Shown here piece by piece: positions 2,603 to 49,200 of a stretch of 64,000 bases of DNA. A program made the position numbers and the translations under genes. Positions within the stretch are counted from its first letter, which is position 1, and each line of letters starts with the position of its first letter. The notes under the pieces were generated by a model that was given only the letters and a program-made list of their open reading frames with translations, had not been told where the DNA came from and made no database searches. Source of the DNA: Octopus bimaculoides (taxonomy: Eukaryota); the NCBI RefSeq assembly GCF_001194135.2, contig NC_068983.1:99005420-99069419 (forward strand). The letters run 5' to 3'.

Positions 2603-3833
2603 AACACACATCTATATACATAGATGACAAATTTTTATTATTAAATCATATATATAAATGTATATATACAGTATACTGACATGTTTGCAATGTAAAAATG
2701 TTCAAAATGTTTCACGCTTCAAATGTTATTTCAGTATGTGATGTGTAATGATATCTTCCTGTCGTGTATGTAAGGCCAATATTATAATCAACCAATGTAT
2801 TGTTCAGACAAGTCACCATCAAACCGGGTTGTGAAATTATAATCTTTACACTGCATCCAATGTCATATGAAGCAGACAGAAAAATTTAAAATAATTCAAT
2901 GATCACATTCTGCACTGAACTGCAATAATACAGGTTCGAGTGGCTATGGGTAACTTAGCCAATTCCTGGACTTTGGCTTGATACCAAATCAAGATGAAAG
3001 TGAATTGTCTCAGTAGCTGGTACTATTATCTTGATGATTCATCTAATTAAACAAACAAACAAACAAACAAATGGTTATCAATCAGCATTTTAGAAAGAGT
3101 TCAAATAAATAATCAATAATCATTGATAGAAATAAATTCATCAATCTTTTTATGGGTACAATACTGAAGCACAGCCAATATTATTATTTCAAATAATTAT
3201 AGTTTTCAGAAAACATAATGAAAATAACTGTCCAATACATGAAATAACTCTCAAATGCTTCTTTTTTTGCTTGACACACTTATCAATAGACACACACACA
3301 CACTTACACTTAAACTAGTAGGAAAAGTGCAAGATTTTTGCATTCCTCTTAATAAATTATTTAACTACAGGCATAGCTGAGTGGATACAAAGTTCCTTTT
3401 GTTACCATGTGGTCTCAGGTTCTATCCCATTTCTTGACACTGTGAGCAAGTGTTTTAAGTGTTTTCTACATTATTCTTGGACCAACCAATGCTTTGTGAA
3501 TGGAAATGGTGGCTAGAAACTGTAAGTAAGTCTGAATATATATATATATATATGTATATATATNNNNNNNNNNNNNNNNNNNNNNNNNNNNNNNNNNNNN
3601 NNNNNNNNNNNNNNNNNNNNNNNNNNNNNNNNNNNNNNNNNNNNNNNNNNNNNNNNNNNNNNNNNNNNNNNNNNNNNGTAGAAGAAAGAACAAAGAAGAA
3701 ATAGTACTTGGAGTATAGTTCCATTCCAGCAGTAAACATCCATGTAAAGAATCCGTGTGGGTATTTTCCAGAGATAATTGTAGTTGCAAAGGTGGATATA
3801 TATCATATCCAGTATACTCTGTGCATTGTTTAC

Positions 3834-3907
<74 letters not shown>

Positions 3908-3995
3908 CGTGTGTGTGTGTGTGTGTGTGTGAACACACACACATATATATTGGAAAATGTGTGAGATCCTTAGTACAGTTAGGTATATTTGAAAA

Positions 3996-4223
3996 AAGAA
4001 AAAGAATGACTTCACTGGTAGTTCTAATCAGTTTAATTTATTATTGATATAAATTTTACATTTTAGTTTGTAGATTGCAATTAAAGCAATAACATACACA
4101 TAAAAAAGAACATATGCACATGAGTTTGTATATATGTGTTTGTGTGTGTATGTATACATTTATAAACATATAAAATAATAAATTAAACTGATTAGAACTA
4201 CCAGTGAAGTCATTCTTTTTCTT
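3996..4223. repeat. Perfect 50-bp inverted repeat (3996-4045 / 4174-4223) with 128-nt spacer
   Basis: Arms checked base by base: 50/50 reverse-complement match. Confidence 0.95.
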
Positions 4224-4484
4224 CTTCCATGTATATACATATATCAGTTGGTGTGGATCCTGTTGATAATGGTTATTAGCTTGGTAGCTTCAATCATGTA
4301 ATTGGGTAGCAGTTCACACTACTGGAATACTAATAATTTACTAATTTAATATTTCCGTTTTATCATCCAATCTCAAAATTAAGATCAATTGCTGAATGAT
4401 ATTGGGTATTCTGCAACTTCAATCTCAGCAGTTACATTAGTCACTTATATCATGTGGTGAAGAAGTTTTTATTCTACTGACAGT

Positions 4485-4709: not shown

Positions 4710-4793
4710 ATGTATTATCCTTCTGTTTTTCTACTTCGTCATCAGATAAATAATTATCTAGAAACTCAAAAGCTTGTGTGGTTACTTTCTGAC
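4710..4793 (-). CDS. Host gene duplicated exon B (GQKVTTQAFEFLDNYLSDDEVEKQKDNT)
   Basis: attgcag|GT...ACAT|gtaagt, 84 nt, phase 1-1, open; paralogous to 5921-6004 with mostly synonymous differences. Confidence 0.9.
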
Positions 4794-5109
4794 CTGCAAT
4801 ACAATGAGATGTTTGTTAATTTGAGATGTTTGAAATGTTATGATGAAAGACATTCTCACATGTAGCAACTGTGTGTAATGTAATGGTATAACTCAGGGAA
4901 AAGAGAATAAGAGTTTATGAGGAGGTTTGTTGAGAGTGAACAATATATAGCTGAAGTTGAAACAGGAGACTTCTTCAGTAAGACTACTATTTATAGAGTT
5001 ATCTTAGCTCAGGATTATGTTAAGTTGATAGAGACCCTTTGGGTCAGGGATCAGAAGGCTCTGCTGCAATTTAGGAAGCAAGTAAGCTTGCAGGTTGTGA
5101 GAAGCATGA

Positions 5110-5335
5110 TGGCATTGTAGTCTTGCACAAGTTTGGCACAAGGCCAGCAGTTCCAGTGCAGAGAGTAAGTTGATTACATCAATACCCAGTGCTAAACTGG
5201 TATTAATTTTATCAACTCTGAAAGGATGAAAGGCAAAATTGACCTTGGTGGAATGTGAACTCAGAACATAAAGATGGACGAAATGCCACTAAGTATTTTG
5301 CCCAGCACAGCAATGATTCTGCCAGCTCACTGCAT
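5110..5335 (-). mobile_element. tRNA-derived SINE, family B
   Basis: Matches the many copies with ggcagaat..ttagca / gagttcaaattcc / ctttcatcctttc / ccttgtgcc blocks. Confidence 0.8.
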
Positions 5336-5399
5336 TGTAGTCTTGTATATATATTGCAATGATGGACAAATACCACTTAGCAGGGATGGGCCACTTTCT

Positions 5400-5760
5400 C
5401 CAGGAATTGTGCTCAGTGTTAATTGCATGAAGATATGAGCTTTAATTGTGTGAGGAATGTGAAGTTGTTATTGTGCAGTCCAGTCCTAGTGGAACAGACC
5501 TATGATCAGAAACTTTCCGACCAAGAGTATCTTTTTATTTGGGTGTGTATCAACACTGGTTATCAAGTGGTGGTGGGTGACAAACAGACACAAAAACACA
5601 CACACACACATGAACGATGAGCTACTTTCAGTTTTACCTCTACCAAATTCACTCACAAGGCTTCAGTTGGCTGGAGGCTATAGTAGAAGACATTTGCTCA
5701 TGCAATAGGGCTGAACCAAGAACTATGTGGTTGGGAAATAAGCTTCTTACCACACAGCCT
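5400..5760 (-). mobile_element. tRNA-derived SINE, family A
   Basis: Reverse complement of the gtgtggtaagaagct...gtgagtggatttggtag...(TG)n...gacaaccgatg family; similar copies near 3370, 10120, 23030, 29765, 35190, 36940, 37730, 46905, 48770, 52025, 58060, 60905 and 62884. Confidence 0.85.
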
Positions 5761-5920
5761 AAATGTTTAATCTAAAGGAACAAATATCAGCAGGAAATGA
5801 TTGGTACTTATTTTATTCATTCAAGAGAAATGAAAAACAAAGTTGCCTTTGATGGAATTTGAACTCAAGACATAAAGGATGATTCTGCCTTAAACTCTGG
5901 ATATATTAAAAACAACTCAC

Positions 5921-6004
5921 TTATAGTATCTTTCTGTTTCTCTGCATCATCATCAGATAAGTAACTGTCAAGAAACTCAAATGCTTGTGTGGTTACTTTT
6001 TGAC
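5921..6004 (-). CDS. Host gene duplicated exon A (GQKVTTQAFEFLDSYLSDDDAEKQKDTI)
   Basis: tgtatttcag|GT...ATAA|gtgagt, 84 nt, phase 1-1, open; not in the ORF track because it lacks its own start. Confidence 0.9.
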
Positions 6005-6472
6005 CTGAAATACAATCAAATATTTAATTATTGAATTAGAACTGATAAAAATATTGATTTTTGATTTAAGCACCATGCTAGAAACTGGCAGAGAGATTGT
6101 GTGATGATGTATAGAAATAGTGACATTTTGCGAAATACTTAAATGTCTGAGACGACTTGTTAATATGATTTGAATTTTTCTGACTATTCTTTTGACTTGA
6201 AAGATTGCCAATAATTATATCTACACAACATTCTGATCAGTTTGATCTCCTTGATCATCATCGGGTCATTTAGTTATGGATGTGTTTGTAGCACCACACT
6301 AAATTTGAACTAACAATATTTATAACTAAACTAAGGGTTCTGATCTGCTAGTAAATTTGTCAGTGGTCCAACAAAAAGTACAAATTTTAGTGTGTACTGA
6401 ACTATTATACAAATCATTTTTCTGTACAGCTCACAGTTTATTACTTACTCTCAAACATCCATGACATCTTAA

Positions 6473-6680: not shown

Positions 6681-7091
6681 TTAAGCACTTCCTCTACTGC
6701 TGCCCTTACATTATACACAACATCCTCTGGAGTAACTTTGTTACCAACATCAAACTCCTTAAACAGGCAGTAGCCACTTGCATCAAGGCCATGCAGTTAT
6801 ACTCACAACTGCACTGGGCAAGACACATTTCCAGGATGGTGGGTCACCTGTCTAAGATGATGGTAAATTCTCTATAGGCCACTATAACAGAAGACCATTA
6901 AAGAAAAGGTACATAGTAAATGCTACAGTACAAGGTAAACCACAGTAGCCATATAAACTCACATAATTACCCTTATATTATGATGAGGGAAGTTATAAAA
7001 CAATTATGAACATTGTTTATTTTCCCTTTCTCAAAATACTAACAAACAAAAAAATAAATACAGTTCTATATTTGAGAGATGAGAAATTGTG

Positions 7092-7318
7092 TACATTTGA
7101 CGGATATTTGTCCTCATCTTGTTTGTTGTTAACACAATGTTTCGGCTGACATACTCTCCAGCCTTCATCAGGTGTCTTGGATAAATTTTGAACTTGGGTT
7201 CTCATTCCTAAGGTATTTTTCGATGTTAGTATTATTATTATTATTATTCAGGTTACTGCCTGGAATTGAACTTGGAATCTTGGGGTTAGTAGCCTGCGCT
7301 CTTAACCACAAAGCCATA
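7092..7318 (-). mobile_element. Family D SINE (tRNA head + (AAT)n + hammerhead-like tail), minus copy of head-to-head pair
   Basis: Reverse complement of 7337-7578 and 14190-14440. Confidence 0.85.
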
Positions 7319-7336
7319 GACTCGTGAGCATGGGTA

Positions 7337-7586
7337 TATGGCGTAGTGGTTAAGAGCATGGGCTACTAACCCCAAGATTCCGAGTTTGATGCTAGGCAGT
7401 GACCTGAACAACAACAACAACAGCAACAGCAGAACAACAACAACAATGAAAAATACCTTAGGAATGAGAACCCAAGTTTGAAATTTCCCCCAAGACACCT
7501 GATGAAGGCTGGAGAGTATATTAGCCGAAACATTGTGTTTACAACAAACAAGATGAGGACAAATATCTGTCAAATGTAAAGAATGT
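7337..7586 (+). mobile_element. Family D SINE, plus copy of head-to-head pair
   Basis: A-box TGGCGTAGTGG, B-box-like GTTTGATGC, (AAC)n linker, CTGATGA-GGCTG..TAGCC-GAAA tail. Confidence 0.85.
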
Positions 7587-7734: not shown

Positions 7735-8370
7735 TAAATTTGGTGCAAGGCCAGCAATTTTGAGAGCAAGGGACAGTCAATTATACTGCCCCCATGCTTG
7801 AATGAGACTTATTTTATTAATTCTGAAGGGATGACAGCTAAGTTCTCCATAGTCAATATGGAGAGGTTTGAATTTAGAATGAAAAGAGCCAGAAGAAATG
7901 CTGCTAAGTATCTTGCCTGTCATGCTAATGATTCTGCCAACACACTGCCTTTGAAATATTTGTTTCAAATTTTGGCACAAAATTTTTACATCAACCCTAA
8001 TGCTCAACTGGTACTTATTTTATGAATCCAAAAGAATGAAAGGCAAAGTCAACCTCAGTAGAATTTGAATTCAGAACAAAGAGACAGATGAAACGCTGCT
8101 AAGTATTTTTCCCGGTGTAATAACGATTCTTCCAGCTCGTTGCCTTTAAAATATTGATTTCAAATTTTGGCACGAGGCCAGCAATTTCTGGGGAGTGGGT
8201 CAGTTGATTACATCAACTCCAATGCTCAACTGGTACTTATTTTATCAACCCTGAAAGGATGAAAGGTGAAGTTGACCTCAGCAGAATTTGAACTTAGAAC
8301 ATGAAGACGGATGAAATGCTGCAAAGCATTTTGCCTGGCATGCTAATGATTCTACCAGGTCATTGCCTTT
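7735..8370 (-). mobile_element. Three head-to-tail family B SINEs
   Basis: Three successive units ~7735-7945, 7960-8150 and 8160-8370 with the same conserved blocks. Confidence 0.8.
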
Positions 8371-8417
8371 AAACTATTAAAAGAAAACTGATAAATTGTA
8401 ATAAATCACCAACTTGC

Positions 8418-9020
8418 CTTTTGTTTCTGATTCTGTCACATCACTTATGCTTTCAATACAACTCTGTTCATCTACTGATTTTTCCTGGGCATGAATATCA
8501 ACATTATCTGTTTGATCAGGATTTGAAACAGAACATTCAGCATCAAACTCAAGATCTAGTAATGGATTGACCTTGGCATGTATGCTGAGATCATTATTAC
8601 TGTTGTCCAGGCCAGAATGAGAAGGTGGAAACAATAGTTCAGAGCTGTTGTGTTCACTAATTACTGTGCTCGTGGTTGATTTGGCTAACCGCGGACTGTT
8701 ATTCAGAGATTTCCGTGACAATAGAGATCCTGTTCGACTACTGCCTTTATTTTTAAGAGAAGATTTTGAAGAACCAGATTTTACTGAGAATGACTTAGAT
8801 ATGTTTGATTTTTGAAGGGACCTAGTAAGTTCATTATTGTATCCAGAAAGAGCAGCATTTTCATATGGATAGCTTCTTGTAGGCCTTTGCACTTTGTCGT
8901 CTGGTAATCTGTGTGAAAAGTTTCTCAATACAGGTTGATTTGGTTCGTTATCAGACACATATTCTGTTGGGTAAGCATCATTTGTTTTCAGTAACCTTGC
9001 ACTATTTCGATAGGGTAAAC
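8418..9020 (-). CDS. Host gene large cytosolic-tail exon (201 codons, Ser-rich, contains LLDLE); ends in GC donor
   Basis: Acceptor tttttgaacag|GT, open 603 nt (ORF 8377-8958), phase 1-1, donor AAAG|gcaagt. Confidence 0.9.
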
Positions 9021-9377
9021 CTGTTCAAAAATAGATGAAAAAAAAAGTATTTGAAATGTTCTGAATTAAGTAATTTTATTTTGTATTAAGGAGAAACTGA
9101 ATACAAAGGTTATATTTAAAAATAGAAAATAAAATACAGAATTTTAAAATACATCTTGTGGATGATCTAGGGTGCTTCTGGGGTCTCATGGGGTTTCAAC
9201 ATCAGACCCCATCATCCAGGTGCAGGCATGGGAGTGTGATTAAGAAGTTCATCTCTGAACCATGCGGTCAGGGGACTTGGTCCCATTGCATGAATGCTGT
9301 TGGCTATACAATAGTTGTGGATCAATTGATACCTTGGAAGTGAAATCAGGAGACAAAAGGTGAAGAAGTCTATAGCA

Positions 9378-10353: not shown

Positions 10354-12657
10354 CCTGAAATATATGGGGAACAGCTTTTCCTTCCAATTTAATCTTTTTA
10401 TTAAGGTTTTCTCATATATGTGTATCAGATTCTAATGGTTCATACTGCACAATAAAGCTTCCAAATTGCTCTTTATTAATTTCCAGGTTATCTCAGCCTC
10501 ATCTTCAGGATGTTAAGTGGTTTTTGCTTCCCTTTTTATAGTGGGCTCCTTATATCTATAGAGATTTTCTTGCTAGAACTTGACCATATTTGTATCAGTG
10601 GCAGCTTGTGTATAGGCACTTAGAACTGCAGCACCCCTATTTCTACTCGATATTATCGATAACATTCAATATAATGAGTCCTTTTTTTCTTTAATTCTTT
10701 CTATATACTTGTACATTATATAATCCTTAAGCTTAATATCAGTTCTTATACCCTAGTTTATGAAGAAAAATACAAAAATCCTGGTATAGAACTGTGTGCT
10801 TCACAGTTCCAGCAACATGGTGTTTGGCTGTTGTGCATAGGAAGCTTCACACTAGGGAGAGAGGGAGAGAGCACTGCATGAACGGCAGTGCTGACTCTTG
10901 TGTTCTGATGAAAGGTAGTGTTTCTTTTTGACTCCATGTCTGTTGTACTTAAAAGCATGTTTATATTCTTGAATGTGATAAAGTGTAGAATTAGATTATT
11001 ATCCTGCTTCCAGCTTCAGTATTGCTGCCAGGATTTGAAAAATAGGGCACATTTGCCCCCCCCCCCTCCTCCTTATTTTGTGATTTAAGTGGGAATTTTG
11101 GAAAACAAAGGGGAATTCACGTTGGTGTTCAGTAAACAAATTAAACACAATACCTGGCAGTGGTTAAAACGCAAACCAATCAAGTTTATGTATAAATTTT
11201 CTTCTTATATATTTGTTTACTTTTACACAATATTAAAACAGCCCAAAATTTTCTGAAGCAACATCCCCACTAATTTTATCTACGAGCCACCACTGGTGCT
11301 GTATGTTAACTGTAGCCTTGTGTTGCAATATTAATGTTACTTCCATAATCAGTCTTCTATTTCTGTGAGGAATTCTATAAAGTATGGAAATATTTTGTTT
11401 GCTTGCCTATCTAGTTTAGTTTTATGGTGTGTGGTGTAGTGTGTCATAATTTCTCCTTGTTTTAAAAGTATGTGAGTTTATAAAAGAATGTTGTACTTGT
11501 TTACCTAATGCAACAGTTGGAATTATGAAATTTGCAACTTTAAATTTTACAGTCAAATTTGTAAATTACAATGGTCATTCTAAGGTTTACATATTTGCAA
11601 TATGTTTTTAATAAGGAAGATTTTGGTCTTATTATTCTGTAATATATATAACTAGTGTCAGCTTTATGGGTATCAGTTTTTATTGCATGTACTATGAAGT
11701 AAATCTTAGAATCCATCATCAATGTTTACAATGGTTTAANNNNNNNNNNNNNNNNNNNNNNNNNNNNNNNNNNNNNNNNNNNNNNNNNNNNNNNNNNNNN
11801 NNNNNNNNNNNNNNNNNNNNNNNNNNNNNNNNNNNNNNNNNNNNNNNNNNNNNNNNNNNNNNNNNNNNNNNNNNNNNNNNNNNNNNNNNNNNNNNNNNNN
11901 NNNNNNNNNNNNNNNNNNNNNNNNNNNNNNNNNNNNNNNNNNNNNNNNNNNNNNNNNNNNNNNNNNNNNNNNNNNNNNNNNNNNNNNNNNNNNNNNNNNN
12001 NNNNNNNNNNNNNNNNNNNNNNNNNNNNNNNNNNNNNNNNNNNNNNNNNNNNNNNNNNNNNNNNNNNNNNNNNNNNNNNNNNNNNNNNNNNNNNNNNNNN
12101 NNNNNNNNNNNNNNNNNNNNNNNNNNNNNNNNNNNNNNNNNNNNNNNNNNNNNNNNNNNNNNNNNNNNNNNNNNNNNNNNNNNNNNNNNNNNNNNNNNNN
12201 NNNNNNNNNNNNNNNNNNNNNNNNNNNNNNNNNNNNNNNNNNNNNNNNNNNNNNNNNNNNNNNNNNNNNNNNNNNNNNNNNNNNNNNNNNNNNNNNNNNN
12301 NNNNNNNNNNNNNNNNNNNNNNNNNNNNNNNNNNNNNNNNNNNNNNNNNNNNNNNNNNNNNNNNNNNNNNNNNNNNNNNNNNNNNNNNNNNNNNNNNNNN
12401 NNNNNNNNNNNNNNNNNNNNNNNNNNNNNNNNNNNNNNNNNNNNNNNNNNNNNNNNNNNNNNNNNNNNNNNNNNNNNNNNNNNNNNNNNNNNNNNNNNNN
12501 NNNNNNNNNNNNNNNNNNNNNNNNNNNNNNNNNNNNNNNNNNNNNNNNNNNNNNNNNNNNNNNNNNNNNNNNNNNNNNNNNNNNNNNNNNNNNNNNNNNN
12601 NNNNNNNNNNNNNNNNNNNNNNNNNNNNNNNNNNNNNNNNNNNNNNNNNNNNNNNNN

Positions 12658-12690
<33 letters not shown>

Positions 12691-13231
12691 ATTATTGGTT
12701 ATATCTGTTACATATATCTTATCAGTTGTTTATTTGAAATCAACACTGAATGCTTTCCATCAGTGCTTGTTTAAAATTTTGATTTGGCTCATTTTGATGA
12801 ATTGAAAACAATTGAAATAGAATTTTGACAATATCAGTAAATAAATATCTGGGCAAATGATTCTCCAGAAGTCAAAGGAGAGATAATCTATCTAAAAGCT
12901 CATTGAATTTTAGGATATTTTTTCTTAACCTTTCTTAATGTGTATTCTTAGGTATCTTATTTAAGTTTAGCTTATTAAAATGTTCTGGAAAGTTTAAGGA
13001 AGAGTACGATGAGAATCTCTCTGGTCTGATGATGTAATATTTCAGCCAAAACAGACATGGAGTTTGAACAGCCCTTCAGCTGGTCAGCTACTGTCAAACC
13101 ATCTAACCCATACCAGCATGGAAAACAGACACATGATGATGATGATGATGATGATGACTGTTTTAAATTTTAGCTTCAAAATTCTATCAAAGACAAAATA
13201 TTGTTAATGAAAGATCTGAGTAAAAGTTTAC

Positions 13232-13357
13232 CTGCATGAGAAAGAATAAAACCATCATTGTAATAAGCTCTGGGTTCACGGTAATTGCCCATGATATCTG
13301 GAATTTGTTGGCTGTGATACATACGAAGATTGCCTTCATAAACATACCGACCTTGCA
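13232..13357 (-). CDS. Host gene Tyr-rich exon (VQGRYVYEGNLRMYHSQQIPDIMGNYREPRAYYNDGFILSHA)
   Basis: ttttttccag|TG...GCAG|gtaaac, 126 nt, phase 1-1, joins in frame on both sides. Confidence 0.9.
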
Positions 13358-14440: not shown

Positions 14441-14684
14441 AATAATTATTTAAGCAAGTTTAAAGTGATTTTTTTTGTGCTGTAAACCATTTCTGTGATG
14501 CCCCCTCCTTCCCTTGATGTCCTAAGCACATGCTTATTTTGCTTAATGGTTAATCCTGCACTGATTACAGTAAAATATGCAAGAACTAGGGATAGAGAGA
14601 ACAAAGATTTATAAAGAATAACTTTCTGAGAGTTCAATCAGTATCATTAATTAAGAAAAGTATCATATAAAGATTGATTCTTAC

Positions 14685-14953
14685 CATTAGTGACATTGGG
14701 CATTGATAAAATGTCTCTCATGAGAACAGGGTTTTTTCTTACACCATTCTTAAGTTCATAGTAAGCATCATTCGGTCCTGATGCTTGCATGTATGGTTTT
14801 GTCATCCATAGACGAGAAGAACCAACCTTTGGCATAGGTTTTGGTGACTGTTCTTCTCTGTGACTCCTGAGTGACTGGCTGTTGCTGGAATCAGTTGCCA
14901 CAGCTGGAAGGTTGTTGAAGTTCTGGTTTCTTCTCTTGCGCTTGCTTCTAGGT
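14685..14953 (-). CDS. Host gene juxtamembrane exon (PRSKRKRRNQ...SMPNVTN)
   Basis: tcatattctag|A...AATG|gtaaga, 269 nt, phase 2-1; polybasic run directly follows the TM exon. Confidence 0.9.
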
Positions 14954-16975: not shown

Positions 16976-18194
16976 GAAGAGGAAGAATGTACTGTGGAAG
17001 CAGGACAGCTTCAGGTGGGTTGGTATTAAAAGAATTAAATATATAACATTTCTAAGGAAACCTAAGACATTAAAAAATTGGACAGATTATCTCATAGGAA
17101 TTGTACCTCATATCTATGGAAGGCTGCACTTTTTTCTGTGTGTGTGTGTGTGTGAGTGGGGGGAGCATGTGGTTTAGTGGTTAGGGTGTTGGATTCATGA
17201 TCATATGATTTTGGCTTAGATTCCTGGACCAGGTGATGCATAGTTGTTCTTGAACAAAACACTTCATTTCACATTGCTCCAGTTCACTCAGCTGGCAAAA
17301 ATGTGTAATCTTGCAATGGACTAGAATCCAATCCAGTGGGGGAATATATACACCACAGAATCCGGGGAAATCAGTCATTTGAACCTATGGCTTGTGAAGG
17401 ACCTTTGATCCTTTGGGTATGTATGTATGTGTGTATGTATGTATGTATATATATATATATATATATATNNNNNNNNNNNNNNNNNNNNNNNNNNNNNNNN
17501 NNNNNNNNNNNNNNNNNNNNNNNNNNNNNNNNNNNNNNNNNNNNNNNNNNNNNNNNNNNNNNNNNNNNNNNNNNNNNNNNNNNNNNNNNNNNNNNNNNNN
17601 NNNNNNNNNNNNNNNNNNNNNNNNNNNNNNNNNNNNNNNNNNNNNNNNNNNNNNNNNNNNNNNNNNNNNNNNNNNNNNNNNNNNNNNNNNNNNNNNNNNN
17701 NNNNNNNNNNNNNNNNNNNNNNNNNNNNNNNNNNNNNNNNNNNNNNNNNNNNNNNNNNNNNNNNNNNNNNNNNNNNNNNNNNNNNNNNNNNNNNNNNNNN
17801 NNNNNNNNNNNNNNNNNNNNNNNNNNNNNNNNNNNNNNNNNNNNNNNNNNNNNNNNNNNNNNNNNNNNNNNNNNNNNNNNNNNNNNNNNNNNNNNNNNNN
17901 NNNNNNNNNNNNNNNNNNNNNNNNNNNNNNNNNNNNNNNNNNNNNNNNNNNNNNNNNNNNNNNNNNNNNNNNNNNNNNNNNNNNNNNNNNNNNNNNNNNN
18001 NNNNNNNNNNNNNNNNNNNNNNNNNNNNNNNNNNNNNNNNNNNNNNNNNNNNNNNNNNNNNNNNNNNNNNNNNNNNNNNNNNNNNNNNNNNNNNNNNNNN
18101 NNNNNNNNNNNNNNNNNNNNNNNNNNNNNNNNNNNNNNNNNNNNNNNNNNNNNNNNNNNNNNNNNNNNNNNNNNNNNNNNNNNNNNNNNNATAT

Positions 18195-19105: not shown

Positions 19106-21501
19106 CTATACTATAATGGAGAAAGCTGCTTATTAATTAGGTATGTAACAATTACTAAAAGAAAGCAATATTAAAAGCTTGATCATCTGGAAATATTTAT
19201 AAAAATTCATGTTCTAAGAAATTTCCTATAATTTTGATTTCTGAAGTTTATTGAATTTTTTTAACTTCAAATTCTCATAAATTTAGATATTCATTTCATT
19301 CACTACGGAGTAGATTTTAATGTTTAATAATGAACATCATTAATTTGTTGCAGGCTACGTTTTTATTTGCAACAGTCTTTCATTCTCGCTCACCTCTATT
19401 TTTTATTAATGATAATTTAATAACAGCTATATAACTTTGATACAAGACACAATTTCAAAAATATTATCAGTTTTCAGAGTTTGTTAAATGAATATTTTTG
19501 ATAAAATGAAAATTTTTTAATATACTGGTATAATTTTAAAGTTATTTTGTGTTTAATGACTGCATGCTATTATNNNNNNNNNNNNNNNNNNNNNNNNNNN
19601 NNNNNNNNNNNNNNNNNNNNNNNNNNNNNNNNNNNNNNNNNNNNNNNNNNNNNNNNNNNNNNNNNNNNNNNNNNNNNNNNNNNNNNNNNNNNNNNNNNNN
19701 NNNNNNNNNNNNNNNNNNNNNNNNNNNNNNNNNNNNNNNNNNNNNNNNNNNNNNNNNNNNNNNNNNNNNNNNNNNNNNNNNNNNNNNNNNNNNNNNNNNN
19801 NNNNNNNNNNNNNNNNNNNNNNNNNNNNNNNNNNNNNNNNNNNNNNNNNNNNNNNNNNNNNNNNNNNNNNNNNNNNNNNNNNNNNNNNNNNNNNNNNNNN
19901 NNNNNNNNNNNNNNNNNNNNNNNNNNNNNNNNNNNNNNNNNNNNNNNNNNNNNNNNNNNNNNNNNNNNNNNNNNNNNNNNNNNNNNNNNNNNNNNNNNNN
20001 NNNNNNNNNNNNNNNNNNNNNNNNNNNNNNNNNNNNNNNNNNNNNNNNNNNNNNNNNNNNNNNNNNNNNNNNNNNNNNNNNNNNNNNNNNNNNNNNNNNN
20101 NNNNNNNNNNNNNNNNNNNNNNNNNNNNNNNNNNNNNNNNNNNNNNNNNNNNNNNNNNNNNNNNNNNNNNNNNNNNNNNNNNNNNNNNNNNNNNNNNNNN
20201 NNNNNNNNNNNNNNNNNNNNNNNNNNNNNNNNNNNNNNNNNNNNNNNNNNNCTTGATGTAGGAAATGGTAACATTTCTGTTGAATAAAGCCTAGGTGAAT
20301 TCAAAATCAAACTACCCAATGACCTTTGCTTTGAAAGTGGTACTTTTTCAGATCTATGTGATTTTGTATATACTGACCTCAAAAATAACTTCCCAAACCC
20401 TGAGTGGCTTGCAAACAGAACTATTGTTACTCCAACAAATGAAGCAACACATTTTGTGAATGATCTTCTGTTGACCAGGATCCCTGGTGAGCTAAAAATA
20501 TACAGAAGCTCAAATACAGTTGATAATGAAACTCTGTACCCAATTGAGTTCATCAACAAACTTACACCATCAGGGTTTCCACCACACTTTCTCAATCTGA
20601 AGAAAAAATTATGCATAATGCGTCTGTGGCACATGCTACATCATTGTCAGTTTATATGATCATGTTATTGAGGTTGAGGTTGCTTCTGGTCCTTATGCAA
20701 GATCAACTCTACTAATCCCAAGAATACCACATGTGTCTCAATAAATGGAATTTCTATTCACATTTAAACGCAAACTGTCAAGCCAGCTTTTATCTTGACA
20801 TGCAACAAGACACAGGGACAGACTTTTGAACAAATTGGAATATATCTTCTAACACAATTCTGCTCAAATGGTCAGCTGTATGTTGCATTATCTAGAGTTC
20901 AAAAGAAGGCTAATATAAAAATATTAGCTGAGAGAAATGGAAACAGTATGATTACTAACAATTGTGTCTATAAGGAGATATTACTTTAAAGCAAAATATG
21001 CTTTTTAGCAAATTTCAGCAAATAGAATTCACGCATAAAATCATATGTAAAGTAACATATATTTGTGTGGAATTAAATTGTTTTGGCATATTTCAACACA
21101 TACCAAATGAATGATATCGTTATATTAGATTATTCTAAATTTGGGTATATTTGAAAAATTAAGGAAACGCCATTCCCATGTGTTCTCACAGCACCAGACT
21201 TTTGTGTGTGTGTGTGTGTATCCCTCCCTCCCCCTATCTATCTATTTATCTATCTATCTATGCTCAGTAAGTTCTATCAATTATTAATGATAGATATATA
21301 TAACAGATTGACTCTTTAAAAAACAGAGATTATGATTGTGATAAAATAATGAAAGCAATATTTACTGAGCAAGTGAGCACTAATATACAAAGAAATAATT
21401 AGATGTAAAATATCATAAAAATGGTTAGAACTGGGAATCAAATGTGGGAATATTATCGAGTGGCTAGCAGAAAACTGCCTGGAGGGTGGTCTTTCTGCTA
21501 G
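19105..21501 (+). mobile_element. Non-autonomous Helitron with both termini
   Basis: A|TCTATACTATAA 5' end at 19105; 3' hairpin CTAGCAGAAA...TTTCTGCTAG ending CTAG|T at 21501; internal Pif1-type helicase remnant. Confidence 0.85.
20252..20989 (+). pseudogene. Helitron RepHel helicase C-terminal fragment (frameshifted)
   Basis: YPIEFINKLTPSGFPPH, TCNKTQGQTF, GQLYVALSRV and NCVYKEILL* match Helitron Pif1-family helicase motifs. Confidence 0.9.
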
Positions 21502-24876: not shown

Positions 24877-24974
24877 CCGCAGCAAAAGTAGAAAATTACT
24901 GCAGAAACGATAACTATGATGAGAATCAAGCAGACACAGACTATCAGAACGATGATGATCTTCTCATTTTCCAT
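24877..24974 (-). CDS. Host gene first coding exon: N-terminal transmembrane helix (MENEKIIIVLIVCVCLILIIVIVSAVIFYFCCG)
   Basis: Exon 24877-24977: ttattattgcag|GAAATGG ... GCGG|gtaagt; phase-2 end joins 14953 to give FCCGPRSKRKRR. Confidence 0.85.
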
Positions 24975-39009: not shown

Positions 39010-40560
39010 TGTCATCAGCATCATCATCGTCATCGTCATCATTTAACATCTGCTTTCTATGCTGGCATGGGTTGGATGGTTTGACTGAGGACTGGGAAGC
39101 CAGGATGCTGCACCAGGCTCCATTCTGATTTAGCAAGGTTTCTACATGCCCTTCCTAATGCCAACCACTCTGAGAGTGTAGTAGGTGCTTTTTATGTGTT
39201 ACTGGCATGGGAGCCAGTCAAGTGGCAACGGTATCAACCATGCACAAATGGTGCTCTTTATGTGCCACCGGCACAGGTGCCAGTCAGGTGGCACTGGCAT
39301 CGGTCATGCTCGAATGGTGCATTTCACGTGCCAGTTAGGTGGCATTGGCATCGGCCATGCTTGAATGGTGCTTTTTACGTGTCAGGGGGCACTGGCATCA
39401 GCTACAACTATAATTTCATTTGGTTCAACAGATCTTCACAAGCATGACATATTGCCCAATGATTGAAGGGTGCTTTTAAATGGTACAGTTATGTGACACT
39501 GGCATCGGCCACGACTATGATCTCATTTGGTTTGCCGGGTCTTCTCAAGCACAGCATATCTCTAAAGGTCTCAGTCGTTTCTCAGTGCCTTTGTGAGGCT
39601 CAACATTCAAAGGTTGTGCTTCACCACCTCATCCCAGGTCTTCCTGGATCTACCTCTTCCACAGGTTCCCTCCACTGTTAGGGTGTGATGCTTCTTCACA
39701 CAGCTGTTCTCATCCATATGCATCACATGACCATACCAGCGCAGTTGTCTCTCTTGCACACTACATCTGATACTTCTGATGTCCAACTTTTCTCTCGGGG
39801 CACTTACACTCTGTCATGTATGCACACTGACATTATACATCCAGCAAAGCATACTAGCTTCATGTTTCACTGCTGTGTAGCATGGCTGTTTGCACACAGT
39901 CATCATAAAGTCGACCTTTTACTCTGAGTGAGAGGACCTTTGTTACCAGCAGAGGTAGGAGCTCTTTGAACTTTGCCCAGGCTATTCTTATTCTAGCAGC
40001 TACCCTCTCAGAGCATCCATCCCCACAATTGACTTGGTCACCTAGATAATGGAAGCTATCAACTACTTCTAGTTTTTCCCCCTGGCATGTGATGGAATCT
40101 GTTTTCTGTATATCTTCGGTGTGCATTGCAGCTGTGTATCTGCCACACACAAAAACTATTTTCCCAGTTAACCCTCCATAACTTACACTGAGTACATCTT
40201 ATGGAGTTTCTACCTATGCCTTTTCAACAGAGTGAGCAGGGCCATCTACCTGAAGGGATTTTTGATTTGTCTGCCTTCCTACTTACTAAGACTTTGGTTT
40301 TTGCTAGGTTGACTCTAAAACCCTTTGATTCTAGACCTTTATTCCACACCTGAAACTTCTTCTCTAGTTCTGGTAGTGACTCAGTTATTAGAGCAAGGTC
40401 ATCAGCATAGAGGAGCTCCCAGGGGCAGCTTGTCTTGAATTCCTCTGTTATTACCTGGAGGACTATAATGAATAGGTNNNNNNNNNNNNNNNNNNNNNNN
40501 NNNNNGGGGGGGGGGGGGGCTGAGGACTGATCCTTGGTGAACCCCCACTTCACTAACCAC
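39010..40560 (-). mobile_element. 5'-truncated RTE LINE
   Basis: PWELLYADDLAL RT motif (ORF 40224-40571), GEKLEVVDSFHYLGD, same 3' tail as 26.5 kb copy. Confidence 0.9.
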
Positions 40561-41122
40561 TTATATAGCATCAGTGGTGCTTATCCATGGTACAAACCCA
40601 ACAGCATCTCATCTAAACTAATTCTCTCCCTAATTAGTTGGGCTATGACCCTCTCTGTGACTTTCATCACCTGATCCAACAATTTGAAACCTCTGTAATT
40701 ATATCTATCTAATGCGTCACTTTTACCTTTGTAACTTTGACTATGGTGCTGCTACACCAGTCATTGGGTATGACTCCTTTGTGTATGCATGTAAAATTAG
40801 GGGTAGGCTACAAATGAGTTATTTCTTTGTTTTGCAATGGTTAATTTAATTCCCTTGTGTTCTATTTTACCGATCTCAATATGAAATAAAATTTTCACCT
40901 CAGGATCCAAGAATCATAGTATACAGTTACATTCTGCATCCCCCATACCTTATTTTTGTTGCAAGAGCTTTTCTGAGACCTCATGTTTTGCTTTCATTAA
41001 AGACTTCATCTAAAGAGTTTCCCCAAGATTATTTATGATATATAAAGTCAAAAACATTAGATAATCTTATAAGTATAATCAGTACTCAAAAAATATTTCT
41101 TGTAAGTTAAAACATACCTTAA

Positions 41123-46276: not shown

Positions 46277-49200
46277 TTGTGTAAGAACAATAAATTTTTA
46301 CTTTACAAAAGTATAGTATAATCCATCAGATTAATGTAAAATTGTTTTTAACTCTTTAGCATTTAAACTGGCCATATCCAGCCCAAATATTCTACCTAGT
46401 TTATGTTCAGAGCAGCCAGATCCAGCCTCTCGGACCGATCCAACAGTGTGATTCTAAAAATAAACAGTCACATCATCAAAATCTTGAAGATACAAGATAA
46501 TGCATGGTCAATTCAAAACATTGTGAATAAATATGCACTACATTTAACAGAGTAATCTGAACATTAAAGGGTTGATATATTTTATTATTTAGTTTATTTA
46601 TAATCTCACAAAAACGTTGGGGGTTGAAATTGTTACTTTATTTGACTGATGTCCAGTAAGACATCGGCTAAGTATTTGCCAGTATTGTCCAAAAAACTTT
46701 GACTTCATAACATCACTGAAGTGAATATATATCGTGAAGCAGATGATCTTGTGCCACAACTCATCAAACTGATTATATGATTCATTATCTATGCCCATTT
46801 ATATTTAGCAGTGTCATATAAACACAGCTGCCATCAATAGTGAAAAGCAGCAGACTTCAAACTAGTTACAAGATGTCAAGCAAAAAGAAAGAAAAAGTCT
46901 AGGTGTAGCTATGTGGTAAGAAGTTTACTTCTCAACCACATGGTTCCAGGTTCAGTACCACTATGGTACTGGGCAAGTGTCTTCTACTATAGCCTCAGGC
47001 CAACCAAAGCCTTGTAAGTGGATTTGGTAGGCGGAAACTGAAAGAAACCCATTGTATGAGTACATACATACATATTTATATATATATATATATATGTAAT
47101 TGAGTGTTTTAGGAAAATGGAGGAGACTTCATTTCATCAAGATACAGTACAGCAGGCTTGTTACTCCTTAGATCATAAAGTAAAGAACCCAGCATGGCTG
47201 ATGTAACAGAGTTAAATAAGAATGTCTAAGAAAGAAGCTAATAATGACAAGCTTAGTTGTGAATGAGTATGTCTTTATGTTTATTTGAGTGTCTGTTTGG
47301 TATGTGCATACGTATTTTTTTAGATGTATGTCAAAAGGAAAGGAAAAGTTCAAAGTTCAACAGAGTTAAAATAGACTAATTGTTTCAAAAGTCTAATTAC
47401 AACTAGTAACACCTGCCAGAAAACATCATGTGTGTGTGTGTGCACACACACACACACACAGACATGAAATTCCAGGTATTGTGGAAAACAGCAATAAAGT
47501 TTTCTTTGTATCTGCTGGTGACAAAATATATAAAAATTTTTAAATGTTCTCAATTATATACAAAATTGTCTAAACTCATATGAGTGTTGAAGGTGTATTA
47601 TGATTTACCTGTGATGATGTGTGTGTGTGTGTATATATAAATAAATATATATATATATATATATGGAAAAAAGACAAAGTAGAAAATGCTAAAATACTTT
47701 TATAAAAGTATTTTAGCATTTTCTACTTTGTCATTTTTCCATATATATCTACTTGTGTGTTCCTCTTCAACCTTTTATNNNNNNNNNNNNNNNNNNNNNN
47801 NNNNNNNNNNNNNNNNNNNNNNNNNNNNNNNNNNNNNNNNNNNNNNNNNNNNNNNNNNNNNNNNNNNNNNNNNNNNNNNNNNNNNNNNNNNNNNNNNNNN
47901 NNNNNNNNNNNNNNNNNNNNNNNNNNNNNNNNNNNNNNNNNNNNNNNNNNNNNNNNNNNNNNNNNNNNNNNNNNNNNNNNNNNNNNNNNNNNNNNNNNNN
48001 NNNNNNNNNNNNNNNNNNNNNNNNNNNNNNNNNNNNNNNNNNNNNNNNNNNNNNNNNNNNNNNNNNNNNNNNNNNNNNNNNNNNNNNNNNNNNNNNNNNN
48101 NNNNNNNNNNNNNNNNNNNNNNNNNNNNNNNNNNNNNNNNNNNNNNNNNNNNNNNNNNNNNNNNNNNNNNNNNNNNNNNNNNNNNNNNNNNNNNNNNNNN
48201 NNNNNNNNNNNNNNNNNNNNNNNNNNNNNNNNNNNNNNNNNNNNNNNNNNNNNNNNNNNNNNNNNNNNNNNNNNNNNNNNNNNNNNNNNNNNNNNNNNNN
48301 NNNNNNNNNNNNNNNNNNNNNNNNNNNNNNNNNNNNNNNNNNNNNNNNNNNNNNNNNNNNNNNNNNNNNNNNNNNNNNNNNNNNNNNNNNNNNNNNNNNN
48401 NNNNNNNNNNNNNNNNNNNNNNNNNNNNNNNNNNNNNNNNNNNNNNNNNNNNNNNNNNNNNNNNNNNNNNNNNNNNNNNNNNNNNNNNNNNNNNNNNNNN
48501 NNNNNNNNNNNNNNNNNNNNNNNNNNNNNNNNNNNNNNNNNNNNNNNNNNNNNNNNNNNNNNNNNNNNNNNNNNNNNNNNNNNNNNNNNNNNNNNNNNNN
48601 NNNNNNNNNNNNNNNNNNNNNNNNNNNNNNNNNNNNNNNNNNNNNNNNNNNNNNNNNNNNNNNNNNNNNNNNNNNNNNNNNNNNNNNNNNNNNNNNNNNN
48701 NNNNNNNNNNNNNNNNNNNNNNNNNNNNNNNNNNNNNNNNNNNNNNNNATATATATATATATATATACATTGGGCTTCTTTCAGTTTTAATCTACCAAAT
48801 CCAATCCACTCACAACGCTTTGGTTGGCCCAAGGCTATTGTAGAAGACACTTGCCCAAGGTGTCAAGCAGTGTGATTAAACTGTGAACTATATGGTTGGG
48901 AAGCAAGCTTCTTACCACACAGCCACATCTGCATCTCATGTACATAAATATTTTGTCTGTATAAGTGTGTATTGTGGACAATCTATTGATAGATGAGTGT
49001 GCACAGACAGTATATGTTCACATGTTTATAGAATCTTATCTATGTTTGCATGTGGTGTGTAATCTTTTGATAGATATATATAGTAGAGTACACTTATGTA
49101 AATGAGATGCAAATGTAATCTGATGACCACCTTCTAATTTTTTTTCACTTACTTTCTCTTTCTCTCTCATCCATTCTTTTTATTGCCCTCCAACCCTTCT

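Follow-up and report, generated by a model that had tools for sequence, protein, structure and literature searches.

Tandemly duplicated exons are found in about 10% of animal genes, and equal length, equal phase and homologous sequence form the signature used for predicting mutually exclusive exons (PMC9013439). Known tandem exon duplications consist of adjacent homologous exons of equal length and phase whose splice sites were duplicated as well and which were retained as a pair, and the two exons described here, termed A and B, share all of these features. The well-studied cases are mostly mutually exclusive, whereas the annotated octopus mRNAs include both exons, and what results in octopus is a short motif repeated within a predicted disordered tail, with no isoform switch.

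Two autophagy proteins with short binding motifs offer a second comparison. In TEX264, a lumenal stub of some 5 residues is followed by one transmembrane (TM) helix and a cytosolic region of about 286 residues whose C-terminal part is disordered (PMC6971691). Its Atg8/LC3-interacting region (LIR), FEEL, occupies residues 273–276 of 313 in the context ...SGSSFEELDLEGE (PMC6971691; bioRxiv 10.1101/2022.02.11.480038). Most LIRs are negatively charged upstream, and TEX264 needs pS271/pS272 at X-2/X-1 (bioRxiv 10.1101/2022.02.11.480038), while RTN3L carries six LIRs (PMC6971691). The octopus protein resembles TEX264 in its negligible stub, its single TM helix, its long and probably cytosolic region with a disordered end, and an F-E-x-L-D sequence near the C-terminus. 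It differs from TEX264 in that its core is preceded by T-T-Q and an invariant Ala, where TEX264 has CK2-phosphorylated serines, in that its motif is conserved over about 20 residues, and in a juxtamembrane CCG present in the octopus protein only. With RTN3L it shares the repetition of a short motif within one disordered region, plausibly a source of avidity; the RTN3L motifs, however, are dissimilar, unevenly spaced and not derived from exon duplication, whereas the octopus copies are near-identical and are spaced by exactly one exon, or 28 residues.

The LAT, PAG and NTAL adaptors provide a third comparison, with a very short ectodomain, one TM helix, juxtamembrane cysteines and a basic patch, and a long disordered Tyr-containing tail. 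The octopus protein has the same layout, and its tail contains no folded domain. It differs from these adaptors in that it has no homology to them, its motif is not a recognised pTyr docking consensus, and its family was found in molluscs only.

To identify the gene, we used the joint translation of the upstream exon, A and B as the query of a protein search. The results showed that A and B belong to Octopus bimaculoides LOC106877405, which encodes a 426-aa "uncharacterized protein" (XP_014781785) whose short N-terminal stub is followed by one TM helix, a juxtamembrane patch (CCG/basic) and a predicted disordered tail. XP_014781785 maps at 100% identity onto the window, that is, the whole 64-kb stretch of DNA that was analysed, and a brute-force search over GT/GC-AG sites yielded a single exon model that recovers the protein exactly, with A joined to B (Table 1). 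No relevant paper turned up in a literature search on the LOC identifiers and the motif string. Gaps are frequent in the assembly, and the window contains 12 N runs.

Two splice sites outside the pair could be compared with a sequence-only reading made previously on this DNA. That reading had correctly ended the upstream exon at 8418, and the donor proved to be of the GC type (gcaagt at 8417–8412). Its last acceptor, 4492, was wrong. The true acceptor lies at 3042 (ttaattag/AT), because the 426-aa protein, ending in Y-ESSR-stop, is rebuilt exactly with it and because the resulting tail is conserved: its O. sinensis counterpart is YESPR and its Argonauta counterpart SEFSR, and the octopod tail resembles the YPGKS and YSGKS of decapodiform mRNAs. 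Acceptor 4492, with which the protein would end in ...CI-stop, was ruled out by the exact reconstruction and by the conserved Y/S-E-x-x-R tail.

Table 1. Coding exons of LOC106877405 in the window and the features of the duplicated exon pair, listed in the direction of transcription
Feature	Position	Strand	Description
Coding exon 1	24877..24974	-	Start codon, 5-residue stub, TM helix (residues 3-31), juxtamembrane FCCG
Coding exon 2	14685..14953	-	Basic patch PRSKRKRR; conserved LPKVGSS-LW and GPNDAY blocks
Coding exon 3	13232..13357	-	Conserved YVYEGNLRMYHSQQIP block
Coding exon 4	8418..9020	-	603 nt; predicted disordered Ser-rich tail, end ...SETK-G; splices to exon A
Exon A (coding exon 5)	5921..6004	-	84 nt; phase-1 introns on both sides; orthologous exons with AG/GT
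Exon A product	5921..6004	-	(G)QKVTTQAFEFLDSYLSDDDAEKQKDTI(S)
Exon A motif core	5961..5984	-	AFEFLDSY; A, F, F, L, Y are family-invariant residues
Intron 5 (A-to-B spacer)	4794..5920	-	1127 nt; interspersed repeats and a (CA)n tract
Exon B (coding exon 6)	4710..4793	-	84 nt; phase-1 introns on both sides; orthologues present
Exon B product	4710..4793	-	(S)QKVTTQAFEFLDNYLSDDEVEKQKDNT(Y)
Exon B motif core	4750..4773	-	AFEFLDNY; A, F, F, L, Y are family-invariant residues
Terminal coding exon	3026..3042	-	AT GAA TCA TCA AGA TAA: rest of Tyr, ESSR, stop

We then compared the two exons directly. A and B differ at 14 of 84 nt, with 8 synonymous changes, 5 non-synonymous changes and 1 change in the 3' split codon, and in the core QKVTTQAFEFLD(S/N)YLSDD the ratio is 6 synonymous to 1 non-synonymous. 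The acceptors are tttcag/G for exon A and ttgcag/G for exon B, and the donors are /gtgagt and /gtaagt, respectively. The exon boundaries, the 1-1 phase, the good splice sites and both counts of differences had been given by the sequence-only reading, and recomputation returned the same values. A blastn comparison of A and B, each with 400 nt of flank per side, produced a single 134-nt alignment (82% identity, E = 1e-31). The alignment extends beyond the exon by about 28 nt upstream and about 21 nt downstream, whereas the rest of the introns gave no alignment, so the view that the flanking introns cannot be aligned holds for most of their length but not for these adjoining segments. No third copy of the exon was found within the 64-kb window by blastn and tblastn. 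A single symmetric 84-nt exon (phase 1-1) has been duplicated in tandem to give A and B.

With a profile built from the cephalopod proteins, a search of 1.84 billion representative proteins (cut-off E ≤ 0.001) gave 20 matches. Eight of these carried a species name, all from gastropods (Gigantopelta, Lottia, Littorina, Nucella and Lymnaea) or bivalves (Argopecten, Ostrea and Solemya) and all annotated as "uncharacterized" proteins; Pecten, Mya, Physella, Dreissena and Bulinus came from a second search. No Pfam domain was detected in the family, with no Pfam family at or near its gathering score, and a PDB sequence search gave only chance matches to GST helices (E > 0.5). A profile search with the motif only found nothing beyond the family, returning just terminal-exon fragments of bivalve-like relatives. 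The family layout comprises an N-terminal TM helix after a very short stub, a conserved Cys-Gly, a basic patch, LPKVGS-GLW and IYHSQQ blocks, a long disordered tail, and the motif itself, which is located 24–41 residues from the C-terminus.

The motif, G-K-x-[VI]-T-x-x-A-F-x-F-L-[DE]-x-Y-[LIM]-S-D-[DE]-[DE], is acidic and about 20 residues long. It occurs in 28 copies across 26 family members, with two copies in octopods only, and every one of these copies keeps its A, F, F, L and Y unchanged. The whole-protein family alignment has nine invariant columns, and five of them fall in the motif. Judged by these alignments, the motif is the most conserved element of the unnamed mollusc-wide family.

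Cuttlefish, gastropods and bivalves have a single copy of the motif near the C-terminus. Two further cephalopod-like sequences, represented by mRNA contigs only, have one copy each, and one of the two is from Sepia esculenta (runs SRR20545814 and SRR31864754, both larval RNA-seq of this species; PMC9538352, PMC11917092). Among cephalopods, the motif is thus present in O. sinensis, O. vulgaris, Argonauta hians and S. esculenta as well. In Pecten maximus, the motif is located in the last coding exon, and the intron before it has the same site and phase (phase-1, within a Gly codon). Because relatives carry one copy and only octopods carry two, we placed the duplication in octopods; on this distribution of copies it is an octopod novelty, acquired after the split from decapodiforms.

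Most parsimoniously, the duplication also occurred before the split between Octopus and Argonauta, an event dated to about 100 Myr ago or more by published cephalopod clocks. In the exon sequences, the signal for a single ancient duplication is slight, at three informative sites compared with 2 and 1 for the other groupings. The flanks of the two O. bimaculoides copies and of Argonauta A are alike, while those of Argonauta B have diverged, so that some gene conversion between the copies may have taken place.

To these data we added estimates of selection on both copies. In O. bimaculoides, A versus B gave dS = 0.93, dN = 0.08 and ω = 0.09 (Nei-Gojobori), with 8 of 13 changes synonymous (binomial P for 8 or more = 0.0007). 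Between Octopus and Argonauta, exon A showed 7 synonymous and 4 non-synonymous changes (ω = 0.08, P = 0.0011), and exon B showed 8 synonymous and 4 non-synonymous changes (ω = 0.06, P = 0.0003). Over all paralogous and Octopus–Argonauta comparisons, ω ranged from 0.04 to 0.16 (P ≤ 0.0075). In addition, all six copies in three genomes (O. bimaculoides, O. sinensis and Argonauta) are 84 nt long with an open frame and AG/GT sites. The sequence-only reading had proposed that both copies were retained under purifying selection, which is confirmed between the paralogues and, at about 0.06–0.08 per copy, between the orthologues. These results indicate that both exons are genuine tandemly duplicated coding exons kept by selection.

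We ran AF2 on the 20-sequence family alignment, which is shallow. The model contained a confident TM helix at residues 3–31, with the remainder disordered and a mean pLDDT of 45; pLDDT was below 60 throughout the tail, a predicted disordered and accessible setting for the motif. Beyond the N-terminal 40 residues, the motif region was the longest stretch with pLDDT ≥ 50 (50–59), and helices were predicted at 365–378 and 386–409 with low confidence (pLDDT 50–59). The hydrophobic moment of the motif was 0.31–0.41 as a helix versus 0.05–0.07 as a strand. A helical wheel put the five invariant residues (A, F, F, L, Y) and the next L/I/M within an arc of about 160 degrees, with the variable and acidic positions opposite this face. 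The S-D-D-[DE] sequence in the motif is presumably a CK2-type site. The tail is probably cytoplasmic, because a basic patch follows the TM helix (positive-inside rule). We read the motif as probably a docking element for a cytosolic partner, in the form of a conditionally folding acidic amphipathic helix.

The sequence-only reading had instead matched the motif to an Atg8/LC3-interacting region and likened the protein to TEX264. Taken further, the protein would be a membrane-anchored selective-autophagy receptor of TEX264-like layout whose doubled motif raises avidity for lipidated Atg8, as the multiple LIRs do in RTN3L, which we consider possible but unlikely. The minimal match stands: F-E-F-L fits the [FWY]xx[LIV] core, F-x-F-L is present in 28/28 copies, F-E-x-L-D resembles FEELD of TEX264 and FELL of FAM134B, the core is followed by acidic or CK2-type residues, and two of the four minimal cores in the whole protein are the A and B motifs. 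The expected upstream residues do not accompany it, since X-1 is Ala in 28/28 copies, X-2 is Q/A/E/S/D/T and X-3 is T in 10/28 copies and otherwise A/S/D/E/M, with no consistent acidic or phosphorylatable residue, and the stricter xLIR pattern gave no match. Invariance extends to the Ala, the second Phe and the +6 Tyr, which goes beyond what an LIR needs and fits a helix face; an amphipathic helix fits better than an LIR because the X-1 Ala, the second Phe and the Tyr do not vary. As for TEX264, the likeness holds for the layout (stub, TM helix, long disordered tail, F-E-x-L-D, and a motif 25–53 residues from the C-terminus) but not for homology: the profile search matched mollusc orphans only, no Pfam family came near its gathering score, and the GyrI-like domain is absent. 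The juxtamembrane Cys (CCG in cephalopods) resembles instead the palmitoylation site of plasma-membrane adaptor proteins.

A related proposal is that the motif is a non-canonical helix-type effector that binds a conserved hub (e.g. Atg8/GABARAP) in a mollusc-specific family of membrane-anchored receptors or adaptors and was doubled in octopods for avidity. We regard this as quite doubtful; if true, the protein would be a lineage-restricted organelle-turnover or trafficking receptor.

The short ectodomain, TM helix, conserved juxtamembrane Cys and basic patch would also suit a palmitoylated TM signalling adaptor of the LAT/PAG type, in which the Tyr of D-x-Y-L-S-D-D-E would be a phosphorylation-dependent docking site that was doubled. 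Several Tyr residues of the tail are conserved (Y97, Y129, Y136 and Y380/Y408), and the motif Tyr is invariant in 28/28 copies with acidic surroundings like those of many tyrosine-kinase substrates. A pTyr site alone, however, leaves the invariance of the upstream A-F-x-F-L unexplained, the Pfam and PDB sequence searches revealed no homology to any known adaptor, and to our knowledge pY-L-S-D fits no nameable SH2/PTB consensus, so that this reading appears decidedly unlikely.

Two further binding motifs were considered and rejected. The FFAT consensus, EFFDAxE, calls for a small fifth residue and an upstream acidic tract, and LC8 anchors are of the T-Q-T type. With the octopus E-F-L-D-S-Y-L taken as positions 1–7, the family is most variable at position 5 (N/T/S/G/H/K), and its acidic tract follows the core instead of preceding it. 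The T-T-Q-A that could recall the LC8/DYNLL TQT anchor is cephalopod-only, with TAEA, SAAA, TTAA and TAKA in other family members. Both candidates were rejected because their key positions vary across the family.

To return to the preferred docking-element reading, its doubling depends on both exons being used in one mRNA. All four octopod annotation sets, those of O. bimaculoides, O. sinensis, O. vulgaris and A. hians, give proteins in which B comes after A; the orthologues are LOC115209825 (O. sinensis/O. vulgaris) and a 400-aa A. hians protein. These proteins read ...SETKG-[A]-S-[B]-tail, the O. vulgaris set consisting of two N-terminal isoforms, and no isoform lacking A or lacking B is on record in the four octopod annotation sets. 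Co-inclusion was judged from gene models, and a model may link homologous exons simply by default. The Logan Octopus-cluster contigs (L012–L014) are unspliced and run past the exon-4 donor into the intron, and no spliced octopus contig was found in the Logan collection. Since all annotated octopod proteins hold A and B in tandem, the models favour both exons in one mRNA over mutually exclusive use. The sequence-only reading had left these two options side by side; the annotated gene models side with joint inclusion and against exclusivity, and neither copy is missing from any annotated octopod protein.

A and B could still be used as alternatives, either as mutually exclusive exons or with A as a regulated cassette, in which case most mRNAs would have one motif and slightly different tails. 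We judge this distinctly unlikely, although equal length, phase and homology are the classic predictor of mutually exclusive exons (PMC9013439), all skipping combinations are in frame, and the (GT)n/(CA)n tracts at 3905–3931 and 5589–5615 could pair, looping out exon B. The intronic flanks of exon A (60 nt on both sides) are conserved between Octopus and Argonauta (z ~4.5 each), unlike those of exon B and exons 1–3, and thus of most other exons; such conservation is typical of regulated exons, so the splicing of A may be regulated. None of the simple mechanisms of exclusivity (frameshift/NMD, steric hindrance or U2/U12 incompatibility) applies to A and B. Double inclusion keeps the frame, since the exon length (84 nt) is divisible by 3; an intron of 1127 nt leaves no steric block between the exons; and all introns are GT/GC-AG and U2-type. 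Joint inclusion is therefore unpenalised and unblocked. An inverted-repeat scan found no docking/selector arrangement, only transposon-like hairpins and microsatellite complementarity, and the Argonauta introns were not alignable. The absence of a recorded single-copy isoform in four annotation sets argues against alternative use, and with near-identical motif cores, switching would alter little.

Given the gaps in the assembly, one might suspect that either exon is a dead pseudo-exon, or that the pair is an artefact of a collapsed or duplicated haplotype. This is extremely improbable: three independent assemblies contain the A/B pair with its frames and splice sites intact, both copies show a strong synonymous excess between orthologues, and 17% of sites differ between A and B, far beyond haplotype divergence.

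Overall, we consider it likely that an octopod exon duplication, with both copies spliced in, doubled a docking motif in a membrane protein. In the proposed sequence of events, a symmetric 84-nt exon was tandemly duplicated in the octopod lineage, and A and B would both be spliced into the main mRNA, as in the annotated models, giving an octopod protein with two motifs 28 residues apart where relatives have one. Each motif would act as a docking element for a cytosolic partner, folding as a helix with a putative CK2-type S-D-D-E site, and the doubled motif would bind a partner that is dimeric or clustered at a membrane with higher valency or avidity.

RefSeq models already include the gene and both exons. 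The case adds an instance to those known of tandem exon duplication, a common process, and reveals no new kind of genetic element. It offers a clean, datable example of a short, putative docking motif in a predicted disordered tail that was doubled via a symmetric exon and then kept under selection, probably for more than 100 Myr. The duplicated unit is the most conserved element, by alignment, of a mollusc-wide orphan membrane-protein family and is clearly functional, and with the motif singled out as the functional element, this family becomes open to experiment.

The locus of the duplicated 84-nt coding exons of LOC106877405 (exons A and B), each encoding one copy of the acidic AFxFL motif, was compared with those of other molluscs. 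Intron 4, which lies immediately upstream of the duplicated exons, carried a GC donor (AAAAG|gcaagt) common to O. bimaculoides, O. sinensis and a third Octopus-like species (SRR11869391), whereas Argonauta carried the canonical gtaagt at the equivalent position. The GC-AG form of intron 4 is thus confined to the Octopus lineage.

The Octopus-Argonauta comparison also revealed conserved intronic sequence on both sides of exon A and upstream of exon 4, and these flanks may mark splicing-regulatory elements. In this comparison the flanks of exon B and of exons 1-3 lacked such conservation. Intron 5 contained a (CA)n-rich tract and intron 6 a (GT)n tract; the two were complementary over 27 nt (85%) and lay on either side of exon B. 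Pairing of these tracts in the pre-mRNA would loop out exon B; the complementarity is probably an incidental microsatellite effect.

Coordinates of features in the window and in comparison sequences
Feature	Sequence	Position	Strand	Remark
GC donor, intron 4	window	8412-8417	-	O. bimaculoides
Same donor position	L002	~14447-14452
Same donor position	L012 (Octopus-cluster contig, Logan collection)	~1020
Same donor position	L001	9102-9107
Exon A intronic flanks	window	6005-6064; 5861-5920		z ~4.5 each side
Exon 4 upstream intronic flank	window	9021-9080		z=7.2
(GT)n tract, intron 6	window	3905-3931
(CA)n-rich tract, intron 5	window	5589-5615
Hairpin inverted repeat, intron 4	window	7086-7584
Hairpin inverted repeat, intron 6	window	3984-4235
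Interspersed repeat, introns 4 and 5	window	5186-5363; 7791-8396
Transposon ORF fragment	window	40227-40580	-	degenerate
Transposon ORF fragment	window	20768-20986	+	degenerate
N run	window	3564-3677		inside intron 6 (exon B to terminal exon)
N run	window	11740-12657		inside intron 3
N run	window	17469-18190
N run	window	47779-48748
Juxtamembrane Cys-Gly	window	24877-24885	-	also family alignment A2
Motif-bearing last coding exon	L011 (Pecten maximus)	13183-13279		also P0047-P0049

Two hairpin-forming inverted repeats, with arms of 107 nt at 90% plus additional nested arms (intron 4) and of 62 nt at 94% (intron 6), look like MITE-type transposon insertions. Introns 4 and 5 shared an interspersed repeat with a unit of ~150-200 nt in 3-5 diverged copies (60-80% identity), probably a SINE-like element. 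One of the two transposon ORF fragments was a reverse-transcriptase piece (RVT_1, E=2e-6, slightly under the gathering score), and the other a C-terminal piece of a UvrD/PIF1-type helicase (E=7e-4, under the cut-off). The 12 N runs (4734 nt in total; four are listed as examples), none of which overlapped coding sequence, were assembly gaps and mostly adjoined (TA)n or (CA)n microsatellites.

In the encoded protein, a Cys-Gly beside the transmembrane segment, followed by an Arg/Lys run, was near-invariant in the mollusc family alignment A2 (octopus form: FCCG-PRSKRKRR). It may be a site of palmitoylation and may determine the topology of the protein.

Exon structure around the motif differed between bivalves and octopods. 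The last coding exon encoded the motif in bivalves, whereas octopods encoded it in an 84-nt internal exon, after which came a coding mini-exon of 17 nt. Judged from these gene structures, the cephalopod branch gained either an additional intron or a novel terminal exon.
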